Shown here: piece after piece, positions 3,224 through 17,693 of the stretch
Layout of the letters: each line of letters starts with the position of its first letter
How positions within the stretch are numbered: position 1 is the first letter of the stretch
Sequence record: NC_016571.1
DNA length: 64,000 nt
Direction: 5' to 3' (one strand)
Notes under the pieces: generated by a model
Database searches by the model: none
What the model saw: the letters and a program-made list of their open reading frames with translations, nothing else
Told to the model about the DNA's origin: nothing
Program-made: the position numbers and the translations under genes

Positions 3224-4099
3224 ATGATTATAAATGGTTACGACACCACAGTAGGTAGTCGATTTAAAGTAAAGGATAAGGTTTCTGAAACTCTAAAGAT
3301 CTTACAAAGCACTGATAGACTTGACAAAGTTGACAATCGCGGTGTCTTTGCAATCGATCAAAAGAATGACTTCGGTCTTCCTCCTTTTGTATTCCCAATT
3401 TCAGTTTTCAACTATGTTCGGGAACCAATCACAATCATTGACCAACGTACCTACTTTAATAGTCAGGGCCGTAATATCAATGTTCCAGAATACAACGTTA
3501 TGCTTCTTGCTGCTACTTTGCAACAGGACTTACAACGTGGTAATTTGAACCTGGTTAAATCAGTGCGCCCATACACTATCAAAGCATTCGCAAATGCGGT
3601 TGGTAATGCTATTGCTCGTGCGGTTACACTGGACATTCTTCAGAAGATCCAACTGCGCGTTATTCTGGCTCACTATTTCGTTTGCCTGGCTGAGAATCCT
3701 AACGTGGATTACATGTTCATTTCTCAGAACGCGGTTTCCCGTGCCCTCGGTTTACAACAATCACAAGTCCAGGAAGTTATCCAGGACCTGGGTTATTTGG
3801 GTTCATTGGATGATCTCCTGAAAGCTATCAAATCTCATCCTTCCCTGTTTGCTCTGAGTCGCCTTGATATGGGTGGTTTGGTTGCAGCCGGTTCTTCTGT
3901 GTTCTTCTCCACATCTGGCTTTAAGATGTTGATGGGTGCTGCGCTGGAAATGCCAACACTGTTCACCGCTATCTGCTGGGGTGCTGCTACTCAGAAAATC
4001 TATCAGAACACTGCGGTTGGTCAAGAACTGAACGTGAAGACTGATAAGAAGGTAGAAAACTTTATCGCTACTGTTGAGTACTACTTTAACGGTAAATAA
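3224..4099 (+). CDS. virion structural protein (phiKZ gp28-like by synteny)
   Basis: 291 aa ORF, first of three + strand genes between sheath and terminase. Confidence 0.55.
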   Translation: MIINGYDTTVGSRFKVKDKVSETLKILQSTDRLDKVDNRGVFAIDQKNDFGLPPFVFPISVFNYVREPITIIDQRTYFNSQGRNINVPEYNVMLLAATLQQDLQRGNLNLVKSVRPYTIKAFANAVGNAIARAVTLDILQKIQLRVILAHYFVCLAENPNVDYMFISQNAVSRALGLQQSQVQEVIQDLGYLGSLDDLLKAIKSHPSLFALSRLDMGGLVAAGSSVFFSTSGFKMLMGAALEMPTLFTAICWGAATQKIYQNTAVGQELNVKTDKKVENFIATVEYYFNGK

Positions 4100-11508: not shown

Positions 11509-11550
11509 CCAATGAGATAATAAGTGTCTATTTAAAATAAAATAACAAAG

Positions 11551-11583
11551 ACCCCTACCCCTCCTTTCGGAGTGGGTAGGGTT
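11551..11583. terminator. bidirectional intrinsic terminator
   Basis: CCCTACCCCTCC-TTTC-GGAGTGGGTAGGG between convergent genes. Confidence 0.7.
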
Positions 11584-12215: not shown

Positions 12216-13697
12216 TTATACCTTTGACTCCATGATTAATGTACGAAGAACAATATAAAGCATCAGACTGGTACGGAGCGAAGTGATCTTAATCTCGGTC
12301 TTAATACCTGTCATTGCTTTAACAATCTCATCGCCTTCAGCTCTCAGTTTGAGAAGTAACGCGTTTGAGGATTTGCTCGACGTATAAGCACCACGTATTT
12401 TAAAGAACACGTGTTTAACATCCTGGTGCTTGATTCCATTTGCACTTATATATTCAAACAAGTGCGTAGTTACGTCATCAACAAACTCACGATACTTATC
12501 GCCCTTAGCATGTGCATACTGGGCTGGGAAATCCTTAAGGATTGATTCCAACTTATCTGCATCAGTTCGGGGGATTGCTTTGGCTGCATAAGTTGCAAGT
12601 TCCTGTTTAAAGAAACTGTTCTTATCGTTCAGAACGTTTGCAATATAGTTCTTAAACCGGTTAGCAGATTTCTGAACATCCTTGATATTCAGTTCACCAT
12701 CCAGTAAAGCCAAGCCTGAGTCTGTCTCAACGAGATCAACGGAATCTTTAATCTCATAAAGCACTTTGGTGTAATCGTTAATAACACCTTTAAGACGGGA
12801 CTCCATATCGTTCACCATGTAAACGATTTTCTTGTCATTATCCATCTTAGCAAAGGCATCAAAGTGAATACCCGTACGAGGGTCGATAATAAACTCACCA
12901 CGAGCACGGAATAGATCATTCCATGAACCATAGCGCTTGATATCAAACTTCAAGGAGAGCTTGTTATAGGCCGTTATAGCGACGTTCTGTTTTACCAGAT
13001 AGCCGAAGTAGTGGTTCATGATAGACGTCATGACACGGTAGTGGAATAACATGACCAGATTGATCAATGCTTCGTTCTTCATATTGCTAGGAAGATTGGA
13101 ATTCCACACACGGTTCATTAGGTAGATAATAGACAGGTTGAAAGCTTCAGAAGAAACTTTAAAGTCTTTATTGATCCACTTGGTCTTGATCAGTTCATCA
13201 CGGAGTCTTACTTCATCCACGTCGATAATGTCGCGGAAGAAAGTAACACGGTCAGATGTTTTAAAGAGTACACGATGAGTCCCCAGATAAGGAGAGCCAA
13301 AGAACTCAGTATGATCATTGTCTTTAGTTGCGAAACCATAGACATAACGACGAAGAGTCTGTACCCAGCGAGGAGTAATCTCTAAATCTTCAACCAGGTT
13401 ATCAAAGATATCCTTAACTGCGTTGTCGCGGTTATAGTTGAAGTTGGCCGGTAGAGCTTCTAGCCCAGACCAGTATTCGGGGATATTCGCAGCGGATTCA
13501 AATCCACTAACCCAGCCTGGAGGAATTGCAGGAGCAAAGAAGTCAGTTAAAGGCTTACCCTCTAAACCAGCTAATAGCTCACGCATCTCAACGTCGGACA
13601 TGGCACGTTCGTATTTCTCTTCATCCGTTAACTCAAGGAATCGATACTTTACTAATCCGCCCATGTGACTTTTAAAACGATCAGTAGCAGCAGACAT
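12216..13697 (-). CDS. conserved jumbo phage protein, possibly virion
   Basis: 493 aa ORF translationally coupled to its neighbours. Confidence 0.6.
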   Translation of the reverse strand: MSAATDRFKSHMGGLVKYRFLELTDEEKYERAMSDVEMRELLAGLEGKPLTDFFAPAIPPGWVSGFESAANIPEYWSGLEALPANFNYNRDNAVKDIFDNLVEDLEITPRWVQTLRRYVYGFATKDNDHTEFFGSPYLGTHRVLFKTSDRVTFFRDIIDVDEVRLRDELIKTKWINKDFKVSSEAFNLSIIYLMNRVWNSNLPSNMKNEALINLVMLFHYRVMTSIMNHYFGYLVKQNVAITAYNKLSLKFDIKRYGSWNDLFRARGEFIIDPRTGIHFDAFAKMDNDKKIVYMVNDMESRLKGVINDYTKVLYEIKDSVDLVETDSGLALLDGELNIKDVQKSANRFKNYIANVLNDKNSFFKQELATYAAKAIPRTDADKLESILKDFPAQYAHAKGDKYREFVDDVTTHLFEYISANGIKHQDVKHVFFKIRGAYTSSKSSNALLLKLRAEGDEIVKAMTGIKTEIKITSLRTSLMLYIVLRTLIMESKV

Positions 13698-14545
13698 TAT
13701 CTTTTCCTCGGAACAGAGTACTTGATTTGGTCAGACTTGCCTTTAGGATCAGCGTACTGGAGACGTTTCTTAATTTCGTTCTCATAGAAGTCTTTAAACT
13801 CTCTGTGAGCATCAGCATAACCTTGGATATCATCCTGAAGGTCATCGACGGTTACACCGAAACGAGAAACGGCTTCTTGCATCCCACGGCGACAGTTCTT
13901 ATAGATATAAGTTTTGACACCAAGCTCTACAAGCTCAGCAAACTTATCATACATCTTCGGTGGAATTACAGAGAAGTGGTCGTCATAGGACAATACCACT
14001 TTGGCAATCATGTTAAAGAGAGCAGAGCCAGCATCACGAATGAGGAAGGAGTTATTCCCCGTCATGGTGAATGTAGTAAAGGTACGTTGAACGTTACCAT
14101 CATCAAGACCGTTGATCAGACGACCTAATGCGTTGTTCATTTGACCTACACCGCAGGTTGCATAGTTGCTGAAGTTATTACCGTTAGCAATAGCTCTGTT
14201 AATGTTTCCAGGGTACACTTCGATAACCTGGAGAATACGTCTACCACCTGTTAAGAAATCAGGTACGTTGACGTGGATAATCCCACCTTGGAGATTCTCA
14301 ATGTTTGCACTACTAAGATCAATGATCTCTGTAGTACCACCTGCTACGTTCAGCAGAGGAGCAACCATCTTCAGAATAACCTTCTCTCTTATACCTTGTT
14401 CAATAGAGAACTCAGTATTGACAGGTCCCCAAATACCACCATAACCGTTGTTCGGATTATCGAAGGCTAACTTGAGTAAATAGTCAGAGATATCGGTAGG
14501 ACCATTAATGACGTATTCAATAGAAAAGTCTACTGGGTTTGACAT
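13697..14545 (-). CDS. conserved jumbo phage protein, possibly virion
   Basis: 282 aa ORF with AAGGA RBS. Confidence 0.6.
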   Translation of the reverse strand: MSNPVDFSIEYVINGPTDISDYLLKLAFDNPNNGYGGIWGPVNTEFSIEQGIREKVILKMVAPLLNVAGGTTEIIDLSSANIENLQGGIIHVNVPDFLTGGRRILQVIEVYPGNINRAIANGNNFSNYATCGVGQMNNALGRLINGLDDGNVQRTFTTFTMTGNNSFLIRDAGSALFNMIAKVVLSYDDHFSVIPPKMYDKFAELVELGVKTYIYKNCRRGMQEAVSRFGVTVDDLQDDIQGYADAHREFKDFYENEIKKRLQYADPKGKSDQIKYSVPRKR

Positions 14546-14592
14546 AATTAGTCCTTCATTTTTGTAAGCTTACAAAATATCCAAAGACAATC

Positions 14593-14627
14593 AAAAACCC
14601 CTACCCCACCCAAAGGCGAGATAGGGG
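14593..14627 (-). terminator. intrinsic terminator closing the non-coding region
   Basis: minus strand CCCCTATCTCGCC-TTT-GGGTGGGGTAGGGG followed by TTTTT. Confidence 0.7.
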
Positions 14628-14861
14628 CAGAGGTAGTGTCATTGCATACACCCTAGGGCAGACTCGATGGACTATATAGGAGCTACCCATAAATCCGACC
14701 AAATCTACCAAAGGCTGTCTACATTGATGTCAACAACTTCTCCCAGGCATGGGAGCAGACCGTTTGTAGCCTGCATCGTATAATGCCTTATACTGTCAGG
14801 TATGCTACGCTGTTTAGTCCCGTTAGTCTTTCGGGGAGTCGCTCACGGTTAAGGCGCGACT

Positions 14862-14952
14862 AGACATGACGGCTTCACTAATGCTGGAGACATTATCGTG
14901 AAGACCCGTTTCGTCTGCAATTTATATCCCCGTCAGACTCGTCAGATGTTCC
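14862..14952 (-). ncRNA. type I hammerhead ribozyme
   Basis: minus strand ACAU-CUGACGA-GUCUG...CAGAC-GAAA-CGG...CCG-UC^AUGU: full catalytic core, three helices and a GUC cleavage triplet. Confidence 0.85.
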
Positions 14953-15584
14953 GGGCGTTCTCTCCCACCAGAGAGTAGGTCGAGTGAAACGATGTCGCGA
15001 GGTCAACTGTAAGTTGCCGATTAATCCATCAAGTCTTTGACAAGGGATATTAAATTCGCTTTCGTTCGAATCACTCTGTTTGTTAGGGAAGCTAACCAAA
15101 GTTACTTTAACTACGGTCTGTGGATAACCTAGGGTTAAAAGATAAGTTTGACGGCTAGCTCCCTAATGGATTGCACCATCCTGTTCACTACGCTTCGAGT
15201 ACTCGGGTATGAGATATTATTACTCAGCTTGAGATCGACAGGTGATGCAAAGGAAGAAGGTCCCGATTAGATCGTTACCTAAAAAGGGTGCGCGGGCTTG
15301 TCAGTAGGCGGCGCATACGCCACCAGTACCGGACCCGCAGCTATAGTCGCCATGCTGGCGACACCCACCAGGAACTACTACTGCGACAGGACTATGGCCT
15401 GAGTTCATTCCTGGATTTACGACCGGGAGGGTAAACCCCCGGTATTTGCCTTCCCATCGGCCACACCAGCCACGGAAGGTCTTACAATCCCAGCATGTCA
15501 ACTGGCACACCCCTCTTAACCCACATCGCTATCCGCAGGGAGTTAAGCAAGACATACACTTCTCGACATACAATCGGGATATTG

Positions 15585-15995
15585 TCATTTCACCAGATCG
15601 TACTTAGTATCCATCTCGGCACGTTTGCTATTGCTTACGTATTCCTCAAAGGTACATTTATACCAGTCACCCTCACCGATTTCCCGGCTATAGAAGATAA
15701 CTGCTGGGTCGTAAGCTTTCTTAGAAGGCTTATCCACAGGACGGTGAAACACTTGTAATGTATGACCCAATTCTGATATCAGATAGGCTTCATGATCATT
15801 ACAGATAAACGTTGGCTGTACACCATGTCCGTGTTCCACCACAATAATGGTGTTCTTCGGCATGTCGGCATACTTACCACCGTACTCACCCATATTAGTC
15901 AAACGGTTAATCACCGAGTTATGAGTAATATGGAAGAATTTTTCCCGGTTGGCTATTTCGCCAGTTGGGTTGCTTGAAACAAGCTTCAATAACAT
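15585..15995 (-). CDS. hypothetical protein
   Basis: 136 aa ORF with GAGG RBS downstream of the tRNAs. Confidence 0.65.
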   Translation of the reverse strand: MLLKLVSSNPTGEIANREKFFHITHNSVINRLTNMGEYGGKYADMPKNTIIVVEHGHGVQPTFICNDHEAYLISELGHTLQVFHRPVDKPSKKAYDPAVIFYSREIGEGDWYKCTFEEYVSNSKRAEMDTKYDLVK

Positions 15996-16039: not shown

Positions 16040-16116
16040 TGGTGGCCCCGGCGTGACTTGAACACGCGACCAAGCGATTATGAGTCACCTGCTCTAACCG
16101 TCTGAGCTACGGGGCC
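16040..16116 (-). tRNA. tRNA-Ile2 (CAU)
   Basis: cloverleaf GGCCCCG...CUCAUAA...GGGGCCACCA; close to the E. coli ileX type rather than tRNA-Met. Confidence 0.85.
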
Positions 16117-16120
16117 GGAA

Positions 16121-16196
16121 TGGCGCGCCCTACAGGATTCGAACCTGTGACCAATAGCTTAGAAGGCTACTGCTCTATCCACTGAGCTAAGAGCGC
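16121..16196 (-). tRNA. tRNA-Arg (UCU)
   Basis: GCGCUCU acceptor, GUAGC-CUUCUAA-GCUAU anticodon arm, GGUUCGAAUCC, encoded CCA; argU-like. Confidence 0.95.
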
Positions 16197-16901: not shown

Positions 16902-17000
16902 TAAATTCTTGCCCCTCATTAGGATTCCGCCTAATGTTTAACCGGCTGGCCGCCGGGGTACAGTCTCAACAGAGTTACTTTAGGATTATTGTCCTAAAGA

Positions 17001-17065
17001 CAATCATGGGGATTTTAACCCACACTTCTACTAGACCTAGTCCTCTACCAACGAGGTGGAGTCGA
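17001..17065 (-). pseudogene. degenerate tRNA-like relic
   Basis: D-arm-like CCUCGUUGGUAGAGG and T-arm-like GUGGGUUAAAAUCCCCAU, but no valid anticodon loop or acceptor stem. Confidence 0.35.
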
Positions 17066-17112
17066 TACCACCCTTCTTAAAGCACTATCATAATAACACT
17101 TTAAGAAAGGTA

Positions 17113-17234
17113 GGTTCCCGCTTCGGTATTTAAACCAGCACTGATTCTACTTGTAGACTGATCACTCTTTTGGTTTACCTGACACCGTGGTCAATGTATC
17201 ACCTGAATGAGGCTACTTTCGAAGGGCAGCGGGA
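17113..17234 (-). ncRNA. structured RNA with tRNA-like ends
   Basis: UCCCGCU/AGCGGGA closing stem, T-arm-like GGUUUAAAUACC, internal hairpins. Confidence 0.35.
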
Positions 17235-17241
17235 GTTTGTC

Positions 17242-17466
17242 TTATCCAGCATTAAAGCTGTTTAAAACGAATCCTTGAGGGTGGAGAGAGTTGTTGGACA
17301 ACAACGTTATCTTTACAGTGTCTGCTGGGATTTTATCACAGCAACAATGATTGAATAACGCAGTAGCTAACCAGACCGCTCTGCTTTCTCTAGGAGCCGA
17401 TACCACACAGGCATCGAATTCGTCATAACTGATCGAATCAGTTCTTTCAACAAGATATAGGTTCAT
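17242..17466 (-). CDS. hypothetical protein
   Basis: 74 aa ORF, MNLYLVERTD..YDEFDACVV pattern of a small phage protein type. Confidence 0.6.
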   Translation of the reverse strand: MNLYLVERTDSISYDEFDACVVSAPRESRAVWLATALFNHCCCDKIPADTVKITLLSNNSLHPQGFVLNSFNAG

Positions 17467-17693
17467 CTATTTAATCCCAATTAGTGAAATAGGAGCTAAT
17501 ATGGCTCTTTATGTTTTTCGGCTAATTGTGACTCAAACCTAACATGTTGATTGTATCTACCAGATTGTGGTCCTGCACTATACAACACTGGCTAGCTGGA
17601 ACATGTAATCACCAGTGAGATTCCTGCTCGCTGCAACGCGTCCCCAGGAAGGGGAAGTTTTGTACTGCTTAACAGAGTATAGAAACTCAGTTA

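Follow-up and report, generated by a model that had tools for sequence, protein, structure and literature searches.

A probable large structured RNA with a predicted self-cleaving hammerhead beside the tRNA genes of Pseudomonas phage OBP and related nucleus-forming jumbo phages

Pseudomonas phage OBP (NC_016571), a member of the family Chimalliviridae and the genus Petsuvirus (NCBI taxonomy), carries approximately 1 kb of unannotated DNA between its transfer RNA (tRNA) genes and its virion structural genes. The question raised by this locus is what the gap encodes. We analyzed it in a window of 64 kb, which is the first 64 kb of the OBP genome with identical coordinates. The gap is conserved and syntenic in related phages, its helices covary, its parts are distributed in a modular manner, and it harbors an intact ribozyme core. 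We consider it likely that the locus specifies a structured non-coding RNA at the end of the tRNA operon, which is cut by a hammerhead to yield a stable, large 5' RNA that likely acts in trans.

The OBP record contains no annotation between OBP_011 (15585-15995) and OBP_010 (13697-14545), both of which are on the minus strand. On this strand, the gap is preceded by tRNA-Asn, tRNA-Ser, two small genes, of which one encodes a thioredoxin domain, tRNA-Arg(TCT) and tRNA-Met(CAT) (together at 16040..16196), and OBP_011, the 136-amino-acid (aa) open reading frame (ORF) that lies between the tRNA and the large RNA in OBP. The gap is followed by the virion structural genes OBP_010 and OBP_009, and then by the thymidylate kinase gene. 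The whole locus (14593..15584; minus strand, as are all features of the RNA given below) extends from just after the stop codon of OBP_011 to the U tail of a terminator and is matched along its full length by relatives. The longest ORF in the OBP gap encodes 69 aa. In 13 homologues, the longest ORFs range between 54 and 182 aa and are scattered over strands and frames; therefore, the region has no conserved coding content. A preliminary description, which was prepared from the letters of the sequence alone, had proposed a non-coding RNA at 14593-15560 that lacked a credible ORF, was GC-richer than its flanks, and neighbored the tRNA genes of a nucleus-forming phage. The ORF content, the GC content (0.50-0.55 in the gap versus 0.40-0.44 in the flanks), the gene order, and the taxonomy of OBP all bear this out. 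The locus was correctly placed; however, the limit at 15560 was not, because the conserved RNA begins approximately 24 nucleotides (nt) further upstream, at approximately 15584.

Homologous gaps of 0.75-1.1 kb were found at the same locus in eight other isolated phages, four viral contigs, and one metagenome contig. Four of the eight isolated phages were detected by blastn (Kosakonia phage Kc263, Klebsiella phage N1M2, and Serratia phages Sureiya and Yubaba), and synteny of the OBP_010 protein together with an nhmmer profile added Erwinia phage AH04, Edwardsiella phage pEt-SU, Pantoea phage Survivor, and Shewanella phage SXP01. Pattern scans added four jumbo-phage contigs from IMG/VR (260-271 kb) and the metagenome contig (L079). 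In every relative, the gap separates the tRNA/thioredoxin block from the virion genes that follow. Covariance models R1, R2, and R3 detected none of the three modules described below at the syntenic place in the outgroup chimalliviruses EL, RisingSun, and phiKp_32. The RNA is specific to one subclade of nucleus-forming jumbo phages, which comprises Petsuvirus, Nimduovirus, Branisovskavirus, Meadowvirus, and unclassified relatives. Scans with a hammerhead-core pattern returned 74 metagenome and 22 genome loci, and two of the metagenome loci (one of which is a duplicate) hold the large RNA. The other loci were unrelated hammerheads without a large RNA and were rejected as family members. Two further viral contigs that matched a 5'-domain pattern were attributed to chance because they consist of coding sequence and have no further motif or nhmmer match.

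The minus strand of the OBP gap folds with a minimum free energy (MFE) of -374 kcal/mol versus -319 +/- 9.6 kcal/mol for dinucleotide shuffles (z -5.77, with 0 of 20 shuffles as good), while the plus strand reaches a z of only -1.99. Folding beyond shuffled controls had been named as a test in the preliminary description, and the helices listed there by eye are all present in the minus-strand sequence, the majority also in the MFE fold. With a MAFFT alignment of 13 sequences, RNAalifold predicted a consensus of -56.1 kcal/mol with 92 pairs, of which 48 have compensatory double changes, on the forward strand, as compared with -29.6 kcal/mol and 47 pairs on the reverse complement and approximately 0 for column-shuffled alignments. 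Block-by-block realignment yielded more than 15 helices, many of which have compensatory changes at most of their pairs, and the covarying homologues that the preliminary description had called for were thus obtained. In four blocks, 90-93% of the cells are paired, versus 72-82% when partners are shuffled among sequences and 28-52% when partners are slid. In all four blocks, none of 500 shuffles reached the observed percentage of paired cells, and in three of them none reached the observed count of compensatory pairs; since the sequences are few and related (13 sequences, effective number approximately 3), the shuffle controls overstate significance, and these figures are not probabilities. 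The strand asymmetry and the slide controls agree with the shuffle controls. In the MAFFT and covariance-model alignments, two helix registers are out of column, as is the pseudoknot in three sequences, and the pair counts from these tools therefore understate the support; the out-of-column helices were parsed one sequence at a time. The first ~100 nt, in which two subgroups differ, and a variable middle block (blocks B1 and B4) yielded no common fold.

The preliminary description had also claimed that the RNA contains a ribozyme. We identified this element as a type I hammerhead (14864..14955), with support from a sub-threshold Rfam match, a structural descriptor, an invariant core, and covarying stems and pseudoknot. 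The core starts at 14945 (14945-14939) and is invariant in 13 of 13 sequences. It is joined to stem I (14949-14946 with 14867-14864), which is open, and to stem II (14938-14934 with 14917-14913), which covaries. GAA (14912-14910) stands between stems II and III, and stem III is formed by a 41-nt, three-part arm (14909-14869), the distal parts of which covary. From the architecture of the hammerhead, self-cleavage is predicted between C14868 and A14867, and the CCGTC at this site is invariant in 13 of 13 sequences. The Rfam model Hammerhead_1 (RF00163) matched 14947-14895 with 16.6 bits (E = 1.3) and did not reach its gathering score of 34, because it fits neither a stem III of 41-44 nt nor a loop 2 of 20 nt. 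We built a descriptor of the core and three stems from the core in the Rfam consensus, using the standard hammerhead numbering. It matched once in the 64 kb, both strands included, versus 0.17 matches expected from dinucleotide shuffles.

The seven core bases, GAA, the A-U pair closing stem III, and the C at the cleavage site, which define the type I core, are present in all 13 sequences. The three helices, with stem I open, are supported by covariation. Stem I occurs in six variants (ACAU/AUGU, CUAU/AUAG, CACC/GGUG, CAG/CUG, CAU/AUG, and CC/GG) and stem II in seven, such as GUCUG/CAGAC, GUCCAU/GUGGAC, GUCUA/UAGAC, and GUCCU/GGGAC. Stem III measures 41-44 nt across the family and has a largely conserved TCCA loop, and the sequence of its two distal parts differs in nearly every lineage while the pairing is kept. 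In a model-fitted alignment of the hammerhead, 89.4% of the cells are paired, versus 75% in shuffles and 30-41% with slid partners, and compensatory changes occur at 14 of 22 pairs; no shuffle among 500 was as high. A tertiary contact is present in every sequence as a pseudoknot of 4-7 base pairs (bp) between bases 5' of stem I (14955-14952 in OBP) and the start of loop 2 (14932-14929). This contact covaries in five complementary versions (CCCG/CGGG, CGUCG/CGACG, UGUCG/CGACA, CAUCGU/ACGAUG, and GUUCGUA/UGCGAAC), and its summed length is 78 bp versus 52 bp in shuffles (maximum 65; 0 of 2000 as high). A pseudoknot between the sides of stems I and II has been documented in approximately 40% of natural hammerheads and is critical for their activity (PMC3088659). 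We concluded that the hammerhead is real and is probably active. A contact of the TCCA loop of stem III with a conserved TGGTGG was considered and dropped because the TGGTGG strand already belongs to a covarying helix. Hammerhead remnants suspected by eye in the Aeromonas phages D6 and pAEv1810 were not supported by the descriptor or by model R3.

The large, ornate part of the RNA is a 5' domain of approximately 630 nt (14956..15584), which ends at the 5' strand of the hammerhead pseudoknot. Searches with nhmmer and with covariance model R2 detected it in the 13 family members only. The seed of model R2 was the region at 15368..15414. The first helix strand of the RNA is at 15580-15575. The junction after the first helices contains the motif TGTAAGACC (15478..15486), the last 8 bases of which are invariant (GTAAGACC, 13 of 13 sequences), while its first base is C in SXP01 and L079. 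It is followed by a 9-bp hairpin (15449..15479; 15479-15471 with 15457-15449; 100 of 116 cells paired and 7 of 9 pairs compensatory) and a 7-bp hairpin (15421..15444; 15444-15437 with 15428-15421; 6 of 7 pairs compensatory). An 8-bp helix (15368..15414; 15414-15407 with 15375-15368) has 98 of 102 cells paired and 4 of 8 pairs compensatory, and encloses a 5-bp hairpin (15402-15398 with 15390-15386) in which 58 of 65 cells are paired and 3 of the 5 pairs show compensatory changes. The multi-helix subdomain at 15168..15366 is closed by long-range helices (15366-15363 with 15171-15168, and 15341-15337 with 15176-15172). This subdomain is the most variable part of the RNA, and its OBP version is idiosyncratic; as block B3b, it comprises 33 pairs, with 90% paired and 21 compensatory (0 of 500 shuffles as high). 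Nearer the hammerhead, a long-range 10-bp helix (14982..15076; 15076-15066 with 14992-14982; 121 of 130 cells paired and 7 of 10 pairs compensatory) encloses the conserved motifs GAACGAAAGC and GCGA(C/T)ATC. Approximately 180 nt of the 5' domain are missing from two of the viral contigs.

A separable second module, the 3' domain, follows the cleavage site (14629..14867; ~240 nt) and has its core at 14643-14770 in covariance model R1. The helix formed by 14708-14700 with 14666-14658 is one example of its structure. The RNA ends in an intrinsic terminator with a U tail (14593..14628), which is conserved and covarying; its 14-bp stem (14628-14597; 8 G-C pairs) precedes the run of T that the preliminary description had recognized. 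The 3' domain is missing from pEt-SU, Survivor, and SXP01, in which the terminator lies within ~20-30 nt of the hammerhead cut site. Conversely, model R1 also matched the Aeromonas phages AhC3_1 (33 bits) and pAEv1810 (32 bits) and, weakly, D6 (17.7 bits), whose tRNAs are followed by a non-coding gap of similar size. Neither the 5'-domain model nor the hammerhead model matched in these Aeromonas phages. An alignment of the 3' domain that includes the Aeromonas sequences has 91.6% of its cells paired and 26 of 36 pairs compensatory, and none of 500 shuffles was as high. The 5' and 3' domains are probably separate functional modules. Because of this distribution, we interpret the locus as two RNAs in tandem, in which the constant job of the hammerhead is to form the 3' end of the 5' RNA. 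The large structured RNA of the preliminary description holds; however, two modules with a hammerhead between them provide a better fit than its single 1-kb unit.

The question of how such an RNA would be matured is raised by its position. In N1M2, Sureiya, and L079, tRNA-Met ends 2-4 nt before the first conserved bases of the RNA, and in Kc263, OBP, and AH04, the RNA begins at the stop codon of the preceding gene. Several genomes have no room for a dedicated promoter, and we therefore infer that the RNA is co-transcribed with the tRNA operon. No sigma-70-type promoter was found on the minus strand of the OBP region; this result is uninformative because the phage has its own RNA polymerases. 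We propose that the minus-strand RNA is the last part of the tRNA operon transcript and that transcription stops at its own intrinsic terminator. The pseudoknot-stabilized hammerhead would then cut between C14868 and A14867. In OBP, the 5' product would be 717 nt in length (15584-14868) with a 2',3'-cyclic phosphate end, and the 3' product, which would carry a 5'-hydroxyl and the terminator hairpin, would be 275 nt (14867-14593). The 3' piece of pEt-SU, Survivor, and SXP01 would be a terminator stub only. Where tRNA-Met abuts the RNA, tRNA processing would form its 5' end, so that the large RNA would owe both of its ends to RNA processing and neither to a promoter or a terminator. Ends with a 2',3'-cyclic phosphate and a 5'-hydroxyl resist 3'-tailing, 3'-exonucleases, and 5'-monophosphate-dependent decay. 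Because they are poor substrates for the decay and tailing enzymes usual in bacteria, the product is likely to be a precisely trimmed, stable RNA, and it is reasonable to regard stabilization as the purpose of the ribozyme cut. The function of the 5' RNA may be approached by analogy. It would most likely be a large trans-acting RNA of the ROOL/GOLLD sort, namely, a scaffold or assembly tied to the tRNA or translation biology of the phage.

Other explanations need to be weighed against this reading. The locus may act in cis on the late virion-gene mRNA, as a long leader or a processing signal, with the hammerhead trimming a polycistronic transcript into gene-length messages. Two virion structural genes are encoded directly downstream on the same strand, and prophage hammerheads that flank genes have been interpreted as mRNA processing sites (PMC3088659). 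However, every member of the family has a strong and conserved intrinsic terminator between the RNA and the virion gene, and in one viral contig, an opposite-strand ORF of 144 aa also stands between the terminator and the virion gene; therefore, the RNA is not simply the leader of that gene. Furthermore, ~1 kb of covarying helices far exceeds what a processing site needs, and in the three phages in which the terminator alone follows the hammerhead, nothing downstream would be released for translation. We consider a leader function to be unlikely. A decaying selfish RNA remnant that was kept by chance, for example, an intron without an ORF or a mobile element that carries a ribozyme, appears improbable to us, even though the locus includes a self-cleaving ribozyme motif, some genomes have lost or exchanged parts of it, and an HNH endonuclease gene adjoins the region in pAEv1810 and is located near the tRNAs in N1M2. 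Models of group I and group II introns had no match at E <= 10, there is no interrupted gene, and the flanks are complete and separate genes. Moreover, the RNA has persisted with covariation at the same position across at least four genera, and its >15 helices are maintained by compensatory substitutions, which indicates selection on the fold. The proposal of one or more unannotated small protein genes, with the structure being incidental, may draw on the short hypothetical coding sequences that are annotated in the homologous gaps of Kc263 and N1M2 and on the ORFs of 68-69 aa in the OBP gap. However, no ORF is conserved in frame or strand among the 13 homologues, an antisense ORF of 182 aa in N1M2 shrinks to 81 stop-free codons in its close relative Sureiya, and the substitutions are pairwise compensatory. 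Protein coding is, in our opinion, very improbable.

The structured, hammerhead-cut RNA that we favor has weak points of its own. The hammerhead remains below the Rfam gathering score, its stem I is short (2-4 bp), and the 4-bp pseudoknot of OBP is not significant when taken alone. The 5'-most 100 nt have two subgroup versions without a common fold, and the family is small and closely related. In addition, the analogy with ROOL and GOLLD is one of size, phage origin, and tRNA neighborhood alone.

Several observations were made in the surroundings of the terminator. Its 3' arm (GGGGTAGGGGTTT, 14595-14607) has a near copy with one mismatch at 11549-11561 on the minus strand, downstream of the thymidylate kinase gene, and the near-identical terminator of pEt-SU matches OBP at 109659-109694, outside the window. 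These matches look like a terminator family shared by these phages. A conserved element of ~100 nt is located between the RNA terminator and the start of the virion gene in N1M2, Sureiya, AH04, and two viral contigs (L003:3367-3480, L004:3367-3489, and L018:2884-2994, with equivalents in L007 and L013), and is absent from OBP and Kc263. An extra opposite-strand gene of ~144 aa occupies the same interval in the viral contigs L013 (3410-3844) and L010 (~1760-2100), on the minus strand of the locus. In N1M2 (L003, ~3490-3655), the start of the virion structural gene appears to be annotated too far downstream; in an alignment and by tblastn, similarity to OBP_010 begins at residue 3, upstream of the annotated start. 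A 170-aa antisense 'hypothetical protein' annotated inside the RNA of N1M2 (L003:2360-2872) is not conserved in Sureiya. In the Aeromonas phage D6 (L020:1400-1460), a tRNA-like fragment with a T-arm and the 3' strand of an acceptor stem was noted by eye after the thioredoxin gene, at the start of a non-coding region of ~1 kb; it was not called by ARAGORN or Rfam.

In Kc263 and L079, thioredoxin-domain proteins are encoded directly before the RNA, and the C-terminal residues of OBP_011 (15585-15995), upstream of the RNA in OBP, resemble by eye in DNA alignments the C-terminal tail of these proteins, which suggests that this junction is rearranged in OBP. A second unannotated gap of ~790 nt is present in the same operon upstream of tRNA-Asn (16902-17693, minus strand). 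Its fold has a z of -5.26 relative to shuffles, it shares patches of conserved DNA with Kc263, N1M2, Sureiya, Survivor, and one viral contig, and it contains an ORF of 74 aa at 17242-17466. This gap could hold small ORFs or another structured RNA.

To our knowledge, only a handful of bacterial and phage RNAs longer than 500 nt have elaborate conserved folds, and none has an established function. The present candidate adds a large RNA in tractable, isolated phages of Pseudomonas, Klebsiella, Serratia, Erwinia, Kosakonia, Edwardsiella, Pantoea, and Shewanella. These phages are nucleus-forming Chimalliviridae, in which RNA must be sorted between the phage nucleus and the cytoplasm. The built-in ribozyme, if our prediction is true, gives the RNA exact ends that may be checked and represents a natural case in which a ribozyme defines how a non-coding RNA matures. 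Moreover, the modular distribution (the 5' domain with the hammerhead, the 3' domain, or both) provides natural variants for comparison. A bolder view, which we hold only as a tentative possibility, is that the ~700-nt 5' RNA represents a new class of giant ornate RNA that is confined to nucleus-forming jumbo phages and has ends made by tRNA processing and the hammerhead. Such an RNA might be an RNA-only machine: it might assemble into a homo-oligomer, as ROOL and GOLLD do, or it might act on tRNAs, ribosomes, or phage-nucleus traffic as a large ribozyme or scaffold of a new kind. The 3' domain might be a second, independently spreading RNA.

How does this RNA compare with known systems? A search of Rfam 15 that applied the gathering threshold to the window and a cutoff of E <= 10 to 14400-15750 and eight related loci returned tRNAs and one sub-threshold hammerhead only. 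The preliminary description was unable to match the RNA to GOLLD or ROOL, and the search is in line with this: the covariance models of GOLLD (RF01998) and ROOL (RF03087) had no match, even at E <= 10, in OBP 14400-15750 or the relatives. In the full-text literature, we found no description of this RNA or of hammerheads in Chimalliviridae. GOLLD has two unequally conserved domains with a variable linker, and one example is located downstream of tRNA-Met (PMC12286853). Both GOLLD and the OBP RNA exceed 700 nt, are ornate and phage-encoded, and lie beside tRNA genes; this is a resemblance of context only. However, the OBP RNA has no match to the GOLLD model, and its hosts are Gammaproteobacteria infected by Chimalliviridae. 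ROOL is a large, pseudoknotted RNA of phages and prophages that is often found near tRNA islands and has no known protein partner (PMC12286853). The OBP RNA is likewise large, pseudoknotted, of phage origin, and close to tRNA genes, but differs from ROOL in size and architecture and is split into two modules by a ribozyme. An internal hammerhead, which is present in the OBP RNA, is not mentioned for GOLLD or ROOL in the literature consulted (PMC12286853).

Known type I hammerheads, those of prophages among them (RF00163, clan CL00010; PMC3088659), have the identical core with its three stems and its cleavage-site C, and a pseudoknot of 4-7 bp connects their stem I side to loop 2. In contrast, stem III of the OBP family is a three-part arm of 41-44 nt, and the ribozyme is positioned between two structured domains rather than between genes. 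The hammerhead is, thus, ordinary in its core and pseudoknot and unusual solely in its long stem III. A further parallel concerns the predicted 5' end. In MALAT1/mascRNA, an RNA end is formed by tRNA-processing enzymes at an adjacent tRNA-like element. Similarly, removal of the tRNA-Met that lies 2-4 nt from the large RNA in N1M2, Sureiya, and one metagenome contig would define the 5' end of the phage RNA. However, the phage tRNA is on the 5' side and is a real tRNA gene, OBP has the intervening 136-aa ORF, and the processing is a prediction. On the basis of these sequence comparisons, the locus represents a putative new family of large phage RNA, the new feature of which is its predicted self-processing.

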